From Bugula neritina (taxonomy: Eukaryota > Animalia > Bryozoa): DNA of 64,000 nucleotides. The notes below the pieces were generated by a model. The model ran no database searches, was not told where the DNA came from, and saw only the letters and a program-made list of their open reading frames with translations. Below, piece by piece: positions 25,501 to 27,000 of the stretch. Location: NCBI GenBank assembly GCA_964035545.1, contig OZ037769.1:1302001-1366000 (forward strand), read 5' to 3'. The first letter of the stretch is position 1, and each line of letters begins with the position of its first letter. Position numbers and translations under genes: made by a program.

Positions 25501-27000
25501 ATGGGTATTAGCTGCATTTCCCCAGGCCTCTGCACAATAATTTAACTTGGAATTGATGAAAGAATTATATATCAAAAGTAAAATTTTTTGAGGGAGATAT
25601 TCAGAACATCGGTATATTAATCCACTAAGTGGTCGTAATTTTGTAAGTAGGTTTGAGATGTGCAAGCTCCAATTTAAATTTTTATCTATTTGTACACCTA
25701 GAAAAGTTATGCTGTTAGAGTAATTTATAGGTCTTTTATTTAATAATATACAGTTTTCTAGAATTTTGTTCTATTTTTAGGCAGCTGCGGAGTTATTACA
25801 ATATTTCTTGCCCAATCTTGAGTTCAAAAGTACGTATGAAGTTAAGTTATCAATAAAAATTAAAAATGCTTATATGTTGCATTGCAGCAGTTTTTACCTA
25901 AACTCCTCTACATGCACAATTATTATGTAGCTTTACATAATATATTCTCAAATTATTTATACTAATAATGTAACTATGTTCGTTGCTTTCTCATCACAGA
26001 TGCTCTTTCACTGAAGTGTATGGAGCCTCTACCAGTACCCAACTCAGATCTCATAACCAGTGATACAGTCAACGTGGGTTCTGTGGTTATTTACTCTTGT
26101 AAAGTTGGGTTCACTAAAACTCAAGGAGAACAGCTGGTCTGTCAACTGGTTGGAGATAAAGCTGAGTGGGTTGGAGAATTGACAGTCTGTAGAGCAGCTG
26201 ACAAACCAGGTAACAAAACAGGTGCAACTAAATCCTACATTTTTAAGTTCTGTCGATATGTTTTAATTTATTTTCATGTTACTTGTTTACCTGTCAGCTC
26301 AGATTAAAATCACTTTGTTATGTTTTGACAAAACAAAAATAATTACTATCACACACATCAATAAATTGCTCTTTTTAAAAAAAATTTTTCTAGGAAAATG
26401 TTCTTGCCATAAAGCTACATGTAAACGTATAATTACATCAAATATTGATAAATTTAGAGGAGCCATAAATTGAACATGCATGTATATATTCACTAGAGCT
26501 TTCAATAAAATTTAAGCATTCATGGAATTCAATCTAGAATGCTTCTTTTAGGATTTATAGCTGGTTTGGTCACAACCTCCTGTCTAGTGGTGGGTCTGGT
26601 TGTCGTGGTGGTGGTTCTGGTATGCATAATTCAGAGAAGTAAAGGAGCACCACCCTCAGAATTAGTGGATCTGGACACAATCAACCAATCAAAAAGAAGT
26701 GAGTATGAAGAACCAGACCTGATGTCTACAAGGACTTCTAGTAAAGTGGTAGATGACACATACAGCAAGGTGGATGATGGAACCTATAGCAAGGTTGATG
26801 ACAGTTATAGTAAGATGGTTGATGACACATATAGTAAGGTGGTTGATGACACATACAGCAGACTTGATGGACCTGAGGACACCCATAATTATGATAAGAT
26901 TGAGATTTCTAACAGAAATAAAGATAACAAACCATCATCTTCTAATGTAGATGCAGCAAGTGGTGATCCTCTTTATATCAATAGACTGGGTTGTAATTAG
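16600..27000 (+). CDS. Non-phosphatase paralog, copy B: signal peptide, 2 lectin/discoidin-like domains, 5 FN3, juxtamembrane domain, Sushi/CCP, TM, tyrosine-motif (ITAM) tail
   Basis: ATG 16600 [23 protein letters not shown] (exon to 16669); exons 16987-17178, 17826-18065, 18816-19001, 19382-19624; FN3 exons 19882-22615 and 23392-23814; 24217-24319; 24432-24711 (RKKR); 25781-25829; Sushi 26000-26209 ([26 protein letters not shown]); terminal exon 26552-27000 ([15 protein letters not shown] plus YxxV/L/I repeats). Splice phases are compatible if 23221-23329 is skipped. Confidence 0.85.
19696..19875. repeat. (AT)n microsatellite, intronic
   Basis: Long, nearly pure TA run ending just before the acceptor at ~19881; source of the spurious YIYI ORFs. 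Confidence 0.95.
23221..23329 (+). pseudogene. Orphan pseudo-exon (first half of FN3 repeat 5) within copy B
   Basis: Homologous to 5165-5274 and ~34315-34424, but the acceptor is shifted by 1 nt and TAT->TAG gives a stop at 23324-23326; the next three exons present in A and C are deleted. Confidence 0.8.
24957..25762 (-). mobile_element. 5'-truncated non-LTR retrotransposon (CR1/L2-group LINE), RT C-terminal region with (CAAA)n tail
   Basis: Minus-strand frame ...[25 protein letters not shown]...[21 protein letters not shown]...QKKVMRIM (ORF 25138-25665 extends upstream to ~25761); AATAAA followed by a (CAAA)n tail, seen as (TTTG)n at 24957-24984. Confidence 0.85.
26740..26865 (+). repeat. 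Coding tandem repeat (21-24 nt units) encoding five DD(T/S)YS(K/R)-hydrophobic motifs
   Basis: [42 protein letters not shown] in ORF 26539-27000. Confidence 0.9.

Follow-up and report, generated by a model that had tools for sequence, protein, structure and literature searches.

The 64-kb window of the Bugula neritina genome analyzed here (contig OZ037769.1 of assembly GCA_964035545.1, positions 1,302,001 to 1,366,000 of the forward strand; 32% G+C) contains three tandem genes with the same ectodomain, made of two F5/8-C lectin-like domains, fibronectin type III (FN3) repeats and, next to the membrane, an Fn3_PTPRU-type domain bearing an RKKR site. In copies A (953 to about 15000) and C (28597 to about 44000), this ectodomain is followed by a transmembrane (TM) exon and tyrosine-phosphatase exons (PF00102). 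Copy B (16905–27000) shares only the ectodomain with them: it has no Y_phosphatase (PF00102) domain and ends with a Sushi exon and a terminal exon encoding a TM helix and a cytoplasmic tail. In this tail, a tyrosine pair of the immunoreceptor tyrosine-based activation motif (ITAM) type is fused to an in-frame array of tyrosine units. Coordinates are those of the window, features lie on the forward strand unless stated otherwise, and all searches were performed exon by exon, without a joined spliced model.

The terminal coding exon of copy B (26552–27000) is preceded by an AG acceptor at 26550–26551 in phase 1 and closes with a stop codon at 26998–27000. Its in-frame reference (26554–26997) has 148 residues. 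A hydropathy scan identifies a TM helix of 26 hydrophobic residues without any charge (26554–26631), leaving a cytoplasmic tail of 122 residues. A cysteine (26623–26625) is located two residues before the cytoplasmic end of the helix, which is followed by a basic QRSK stop-transfer sequence. The tail is acidic, with abundant Asp, Ser, Lys and Tyr, and contains eight tyrosines. A weak Pfam match of the exon to DAP10 (E = 0.036) is caused by the TM segment and was dismissed as meaningless. About 350 nt past the stop codon, AATAAA at 27352–27357 is a candidate polyadenylation signal; it lies near the point where homology with the two closest paralogs, G1 and G2 (see below), ends.

The tail carries an ordered series of tyrosine motifs. 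EYEEP (26701–26715) corresponds to a Src/Nck-type SH2 consensus. A coding minisatellite follows (26739–26860), composed of five units of 24, 24, 21, 24 and 24 nt encoding SK[V/M](V)DDxY, with Tyr codons at 26761, 26785, 26806, 26830 and 26854. Tandem Repeats Finder (TRF) describes it with a period of 24, 5.2 copies, 74% matches and a score of 125, and also reports periods of 45 and 69. Four units read DDxYSK[V/M], while the fifth, diverged, reads DDTYSRL and is also the first half of the ITAM-type pair, DDTYSRL-x8-YDKI (26845–26901, 19 residues). The pair matches [DE]xxYxx[LI]-x8-Yxx[LI], and the predicted topology places it in the cytoplasmic part, after the TM helix and QRSK of the same exon. 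The general pattern Yxx[L/I]-x6-8-Yxx[L/I] occurred in 0.8% of 200,000 composition-preserving shuffles of the 122-residue cytoplasmic part, and in 0.16% when an acidic residue was required at −3; the pair is therefore not explained by composition. Finally, a terminal YIN (26974–26982) corresponds to a Grb2/Drk-type SH2 consensus (YxN).

An earlier note on this DNA, made from the letters alone, had described a TM helix and whole tail within one exon, an exact ITAM consensus preceded by four acidic YSKV/YSKM repeats of 21–24 nt, EYEEP and YIN flanking them, and YSKV units lacking the −2 hydrophobic residue of immunoreceptor tyrosine-based inhibition motifs (ITIMs). Our analysis agrees on each of these points: the frame is unbroken from 26552 to the stop codon, the coordinates and the motif are exact, and the TRF array has the described units. 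As to the last point, the units depart from both the ITIM ([S/I/V/L]-x-Y-x-x-[I/V/L]) and the immunoreceptor tyrosine-based switch motif (ITSM; T-x-Y-x-x-[V/I]), since position −2 is Asp (or Gly) in all of them and Thr is found at −1. With respect to the hemi-ITAM (hemITAM) consensus DEDxYxxL, they read (V)DD[T/G/S]-Y-S-K-V, that is, with two acidic residues and Val at +3, Leu being found in the last unit only. Six of the eight tail tyrosines also match the YxxΦ sorting pattern, which is too loose to discriminate between readings.

Nine related tails were compared. Four belong to this genome: besides copy B, two genes with the same Sushi and tail ending (G1 and G2, at C5:1283767 and C5:1295723) lie 33 and 45 kb upstream, and a fourth tail copy, hereafter named the distant copy, is found 7 Mb away at C5:8289077. 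The other five come from public Bugula data (three Joint Genome Institute contigs, one NCBI contig and one Logan contig). Because the B. neritina contig GCA_010799875.2 is about 82–86% identical to our sequence even in introns, and a second orthologous public contig is 86% identical over non-coding DNA, these data were treated as a sibling lineage. With the tail of copy B, those of the three other copies in this genome share 95, 93 and 69% identity. The Yxx[LI]-x8-Yxx[LI] pair is kept in 8 of the 9 tails, with a constant 8-residue spacing throughout, and YIN is invariant in each of the nine tails that extends to it. All three cluster paralogs and two of the sibling-lineage copies retain the complete 148-codon frame.

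Within this genome, Tyr70, 78, 85, 93, 101, 113 and 141 are invariant across the four copies. EYEEP reads EYE[EGD]P in the cluster copies and EHRDP in the distant copy, and YSKM, a p85-type site, is found in copy B only. Of the tyrosines whose conservation the earlier note had left to be checked in orthologs, seven, those of the pair included, are thus kept in all copies of this genome, and that of EYEEP is replaced by His in the distant copy. In the comparison with this 69%-identical copy, 1 of 14 Tyr and Tyr+3 positions has changed, against 7 of 14 at Tyr+1 and Tyr+2 and 38 of 108 at other cytoplasmic positions (one-sided p = 0.027). Retention of Tyr and +3 with free +1 and +2 is the pattern that would be expected for motifs of the SH2 or YxxΦ type.

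The array varies by whole units. Four units precede the pair in each of the four copies of this genome. In the sibling lineage, two copies have two units and are exactly 45 nt shorter, which corresponds to one 24-nt plus one 21-nt unit and to one of the TRF periods. A third copy has three units and is 21 nt shorter, and another has four 24-nt units (3 nt longer), two of which have lost their Tyr (2 + 2 degenerate). Length changes between lineages are in frame and the terminal pair is retained every time. The earlier note had called the array expandable; the whole-unit differences between sibling-lineage copies bear this out, while the identical unit number of the four copies in this genome does not. 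That repeat number could act as a dial on signal strength, as it also proposed, is pure conjecture. Separately, a 1378-bp Logan contig (SRR26215654) contains an intron-free frame with approximately nine DDPYSK[V/L]K units together with YDHL-x13-YDHI and other Tyr motifs; its product would be an acidic Tyr-repeat tail that either arose independently or is distantly related.

Between lineages, the cytoplasmic coding sequence is 90.9% identical to that of a sibling-lineage contig, the intron just 5' of the tail exon 87.0%, the intron 5' of the Sushi exon 77.8% and the 3' flank 81.2% (p < 4e-4 for these last two against the coding sequence). Comparison of synonymous and non-synonymous rates in the cytoplasmic parts of copy B and the distant copy gave a dN/dS of 0.36 (dS 0.47, p = 2e-4). 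The distant copy (C5:8288576–8289517) consists of a Sushi exon and a tail exon only, and the 18 kb upstream of it contain no ectodomain. Its Sushi exon is interrupted by two in-frame stops: a TAA immediately follows the first Cys, and a TAG takes the place of the conserved Trp. Its tail frame is nevertheless still open. Its sibling-lineage ortholog, found on a Logan contig, shows 86% identity over the whole length, and a frameshift interrupts its tail. The distant copy was consequently downgraded as evidence of long-term or current constraint, and is regarded as a pseudogene relic.

Upstream of its tail, copy B is colinear with copy C up to the donor of the membrane-proximal FN3 exon at 24711, apart from the loss of one FN3 exon through a 1.2-kb deletion. 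The deletion maps near 23343–23357 of copy B and corresponds to 34438–35621 of copy C; the FN3 exon concerned (35272–35562 in copy C) is also present in copy A. Hence, the ectodomain of copy B is one FN3 shorter than those of its phosphatase-type neighbors. The membrane-proximal FN3 exon (24432–24711; Pfam PF23144, E = 1.1e-12) is Fn3_PTPRU-like, carries the RKKR furin-type site and is the last exon common to copy B and copies A and C; homology ends at 24713–24717, with unrelated sequence beyond. The intron that follows contains a retroelement fragment of about 0.8 kb on the reverse strand (24959–25762), with a 210-residue open frame (25141–25770). A Pfam search of this frame gave zero matches, and the retroelement label is a reading of its translation only. 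The fragment is specific to copy B, as alignments of G1, G2 and the NCBI Bugula contig skip from 24958 to 25763. Next comes the Sushi/CCP exon (26000–26209), with four Cys and the conserved Trp, which matches PF00084 over its full length (1–56/56, E = 6.6e-6). Elsewhere in the genome, many tandem arrays of tyrosine-phosphatase exons were observed at C1:3.96–4.23, C6:8.02–8.43, C3:7.6–8.14 and C5:0.49–0.53, 1.51 and 2.14–2.31 Mb, which suggests large lineage-specific expansions of receptor-type phosphatases.

Candidate readers of phosphorylated tails are encoded in this genome. A Shark-type kinase gene (SH2-ankyrin-SH2-kinase), with three exons bearing ankyrin repeats, is located at C7:14.371–14.378 Mb (14371000–14378400). 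Both of its SH2 domains retain the FLxR arginine, and the best solved relatives of the kinase exon are SYK (E = 4e-28) and ZAP-70, apart from a higher-scoring EGFR entry (9p9u) matched in two stretches. An SHP-type gene, with two SH2 domains and a protein tyrosine phosphatase (PTP) domain, is located at C3:23.740–23.748 Mb (23740128–23748502). These two genes are likely the readers of ITAM-type and ITIM-type tails, respectively. Dozens of small unplaced contigs (e.g. C10, C15, C33, C66, C170, C176, C201 and C304) also contain kinase or phosphatase domains, intron-free and in frames broken almost exclusively by TAA and TAG, rarely by TGA; these contigs probably use a ciliate-type genetic code and come from a ciliate epibiont or contaminant in the assembly.

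Building on the anatomy of the exon, its motifs and their conservation, the unit-wise change of the array and the presence of reader genes, we favor, with a probability of about one half, the reading that the terminal exon is real and encodes a multi-phosphotyrosine docking tail, in which Shark would read the pair as an ITAM, YIN would be a site for Grb2/Drk, and the YSKV units would provide auxiliary hemITAM-like sites. We infer that the exon is transcribed and spliced, and that the tail is phosphorylated, binds SH2 domains and has an activating role. Copy B would be one of three neighboring paralogs that keep the F5/8-C lectin and FN3 ectodomain of the adjacent receptor tyrosine phosphatases, the Sushi and TM/tail exons substituting for the phosphatase part after the membrane-proximal FN3 exon. 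The tail would most likely be a disordered docking module. Upon ligand-driven clustering, a Src-family kinase would phosphorylate the acid-flanked tyrosines. The doubly phosphorylated YSRL-x8-YDKI would then be bound by the tandem SH2 domains of the Shark (Syk-family) kinase, the invariant YIN would recruit a Grb2/Drk-type adaptor, and the four upstream DDxYSKV units, which would have arisen by in-frame minisatellite duplication, would offer additional docking sites of lower affinity.

Several observations weigh against this proposal. The spacing of 8 is the upper limit of the strict consensus, and the NCBI sibling-lineage copy reads YSRP at the pair. Val at +3 is not the residue favored by Syk SH2 domains. 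Two sibling-lineage copies have a frameshift or a premature stop directly past the pair, which could reflect gene turnover or contig errors. Between copy B and the sibling-lineage copies, dN/dS is about 0.6 (dS 0.13), which is not significantly below 1. In addition, the cluster tails are nearly identical. Between copy B and its nearest paralog, divergence is 1.4% in the cytoplasmic part, whereas the TM segment differs by 8% and the intron by about 10% (p = 3e-7). Likewise, 26635–26997 is 97–99% identical to G1 and G2, whereas identity is 84–92% in the TM segment, intron and 3' flank next to it. Since synonymous sites share the low divergence of the tail while the flanks diverge, these data point to gene conversion in a short tract restricted to the tail, rather than to constraint or selection alone. 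The main difficulty concerns splicing: the donor of the FN3 exon (GAG|GT after 24711) is in phase 0 and the strong acceptor of the Sushi exon (cacag|26000) in phase 1, and joining them leads to a stop after five codons.

The main competitor, to which we assign a distinctly lower but real chance, is a sorting tail. YSKV, YSRL and YDKI would then act, unphosphorylated, as YxxΦ signals for the AP-2/clathrin adaptor, copy B being an endocytic or phagocytic lectin receptor in which the ITAM spacing is incidental. Except in YIN, each of the seven conserved tyrosines is followed at +3 by a hydrophobic residue, in most cases Val, and acidic clusters stand beside all units. Val at +3 suits YxxΦ binding of the mu2 type better than binding by Syk SH2 domains, and the conservation of Tyr and +3 with free +1 and +2 fits YxxΦ equally well. 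On the other hand, sorting would require neither the constant 8-residue spacing nor the confinement of Leu/Ile at +3 to the terminal pair, kept in 8 of 9 copies, and it does not account for the invariant YIN, which lacks Φ at +3. Moreover, many ITAM receptors both signal and internalize, so that a sorting function would leave signaling possible.

Whether the exon is translated at all depends on how the FN3 and Sushi exons are joined. Owing to the phase mismatch, the tail can be connected to the lectin/FN3 ectodomain only via a second AG, the weaker AAG|TGT at 26017 (phase 0), 17 nt downstream of the first; it is the sole frame-keeping Sushi acceptor and is conserved in all copies, as are the acceptor and donor motifs of the Sushi exon. 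From there on, phases agree, the Sushi donor after 26209 and the tail acceptor at 26552 being both in phase 1. Two further junctions show a similar situation. Copy A combines a phase-0 donor at 7898 with a phase-1 TM-exon acceptor at 8407, and has an in-frame AAG|TGT at 8451. One junction earlier in copy B, a phase-1 donor at 23814 is paired with a phase-2 acceptor at 24432, and an in-frame acceptor is available at 24446. Thus, at the three junctions, the first strong AG leads to a stop 4–5 codons on, and a second AG 14, 17 or 44 nt downstream keeps the frame. Because the phosphatase of copy A needs a membrane-bound product and yet shows the same mismatch, we read it as a family-wide feature with an in-frame solution and not as proof of an untranslated tail. 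Alternative use of the acceptors could possibly yield soluble and membrane forms; incomplete exon models could also account for the pattern. Inspection of distant phosphatase-type TM exons (C5:0.49 and 0.52 Mb) did not settle the acceptor choice.

Two other models were considered and rejected. A micro-exon could restore the phase, but the only donor-like site (about 24808) has unfitting lengths, differs by a 4-nt indel in G1 and is missing from the sibling contig. A separate small gene made of a signal peptide, Sushi, TM helix and tail was rejected for the cluster; the cluster introns of about 490 nt contain no exon with an ATG, a hydrophobic stretch and a phase-1 donor. A signal-peptide exon candidate was found only upstream of the distant copy, whose Sushi exon is broken. 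In the NCBI data, model KAF6025887.1 on VXIV02002407.1 (202 residues) connects the FN3 exon with an AG inside the tail exon, without the Sushi exon and the TM helix. As it skips both, a gene finder met the same problem; the model, devoid of a membrane anchor, is probably wrong.

These elements frame a second alternative, which we consider improbable, namely that translation of a receptor does not include the exon. With splicing to 26000, a stop and a soluble ectodomain would result, and the Sushi, TM and tail sequences would be a 3' untranslated region or the decaying relic of a domain swap. The phase mismatch and the exclusion of the Sushi exon and TM helix from KAF6025887.1 are in line with this view, as are the Sushi stops, the missing ectodomain and the frameshifted sibling ortholog of the distant copy at C5:8.289 Mb, and the frameshift or stop in sibling-lineage cluster copies. 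Several facts oppose it: the 148-codon frame is open in three cluster paralogs and two sibling copies, dN/dS is 0.36–0.6 with preferential retention of motif positions, and the exons are more conserved across lineages than the upstream intron and the 3' flank. The agreement of phases from Sushi to tail, the mismatch shared by copy A, which is of the phosphatase type and has to make a membrane-bound product, and the lack of a signal-peptide exon for a separate small gene in the cluster introns argue in the same direction. Weakest of all is an inhibitory or substrate tail dampening signaling, whose phosphorylated YxxV units would recruit an SHP-type phosphatase or serve as substrate or decoy for the neighboring receptor phosphatases: ITIM/ITSM-type sites typically have Val at +3, the genome has an SH2-SH2-PTP gene and copy B is flanked by phosphatase-type paralogs with the same ectodomain, but the −2 residue that defines an ITIM is Asp instead of hydrophobic, Thr stands at −1 where an ITSM requires it at −2, and the only sites with Leu/Ile at +3 form the ITAM-spaced pair.

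We also compared copy B with known systems. Word-index and exhaustive representative searches for protein relatives outside Bugula returned only Bugula-type fragments and low-complexity repeat matches, and a metagenome scan with the tail alignment gave zero confirmed relatives. A language-model atlas placed the SCIMP and A36R clusters as weak neighbors (0.80–0.81, below threshold), which are leads only. The literature search retrieved no paper linking Bugula and ITAM, and none on ITAM signaling in bryozoans. In this genome, the TM and tail exon of a more distant FN3 receptor was noticed at C5:8568407–8568790, with FN3 exons at C5:8559267–8567861. It contains the motifs EYEEV, EYVEV, YESI-x8-YDKV and LYQNV in colinear order, without a minisatellite and without a Sushi exon, and phosphatase exons lie about 37 kb upstream. 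The alignment is marginal (E = 0.022) and is a lead only; this tail may be a pre-expansion form of that of copy B.

One of the nearest systems in function is Drosophila Draper (CED-1/MEGF10 family), whose ITAM is read by Shark, as cited in PMC9546547. Draper is, like copy B, an invertebrate type I receptor with its own ITAM in a Tyr-rich tail, and a kinase of the same SH2-ankyrin-SH2-kinase type is encoded here. Unlike Draper, which has an ectodomain of EMI and EGF repeats, copy B combines F5/8-C lectin, FN3 and Sushi domains, with a spacing of 8 and a Tyr-unit array before the pair. The shared features go without detectable kinship: protein searches found no sequence homology between the tail of copy B and Draper, Alr, FcoR or vertebrate paired receptors. 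The ITAM spacing of Draper is longer than 8.

Copy B also recalls recognition receptors of other colonial marine animals. ITAM-bearing Alr receptors and their Syk/Shark readers have been described in Hydractinia (PMC9546547), and the FcoR tails of Botryllus carry hemITAM and ITIM motifs (PMC12582321). As in copy B, these are clustered, fast-turnover receptor families with acid-flanked Tyr tail motifs (ITAM, hemITAM, ITIM), in genomes with Syk/Shark and SHP homologs (PMC9546547, PMC12582321). The Botryllus hemITAM EDDVYAIL resembles the Tyr units of copy B. In contrast to copy B, Alr and FcoR have ectodomains of the Ig superfamily, and neither a coding minisatellite of Tyr units nor a phosphatase sister gene with the same ectodomain is described for them.

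With vertebrate KIR, Ly49, SIRP and PIR, the cluster shares near-identical ectodomains on adjacent genes, opposite intracellular outputs and gene conversion between copies. Vertebrate activating paired receptors usually borrow the ITAM of DAP12 or FcRgamma via a charged TM residue, and their inhibitory counterparts use ITIMs. Copy B differs in that its TM helix is uncharged and its ITAM-type pair is built in, while a receptor tyrosine phosphatase would itself act as the "off" partner. Finally, its TM helix with a Cys near the cytoplasmic end, its probably disordered tail and its several putative SH2 docking tyrosines, including YxN, are reminiscent of LAT, SCIMP and poxvirus A36. These proteins, however, have almost no ectodomain and show no detectable homology to copy B. 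The new elements are the coding minisatellite of Tyr units fused to an ITAM-type pair, and the sister genes with a phosphatase on the same ectodomain.

A broader and rather unlikely proposal is that the alternating genes form a paired off/on recognition system, serving allorecognition or immunity of this colonial animal. The same lectin/FN3 sensor would be mounted either on a phosphatase (copies A and C) or on an ITAM-type tail (copy B and its two upstream paralogs). The gain of the on-arm would evolve by whole-unit slippage, and two AG acceptors 14–44 nt apart would switch both gene types between soluble and membrane-bound forms.

To our knowledge, ITAM signaling outside vertebrates is known from few systems. 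If the tail of copy B signals, it would represent a lophotrochozoan receptor carrying its own ITAM-type pair, and would illustrate how an in-frame minisatellite can both build such a tail and alter its length. It would also reveal a paired-receptor design in which a receptor phosphatase, built on the same ectodomain, is the counterpart, and would bear on the repeated origin of self/non-self and innate recognition in colonial animals.

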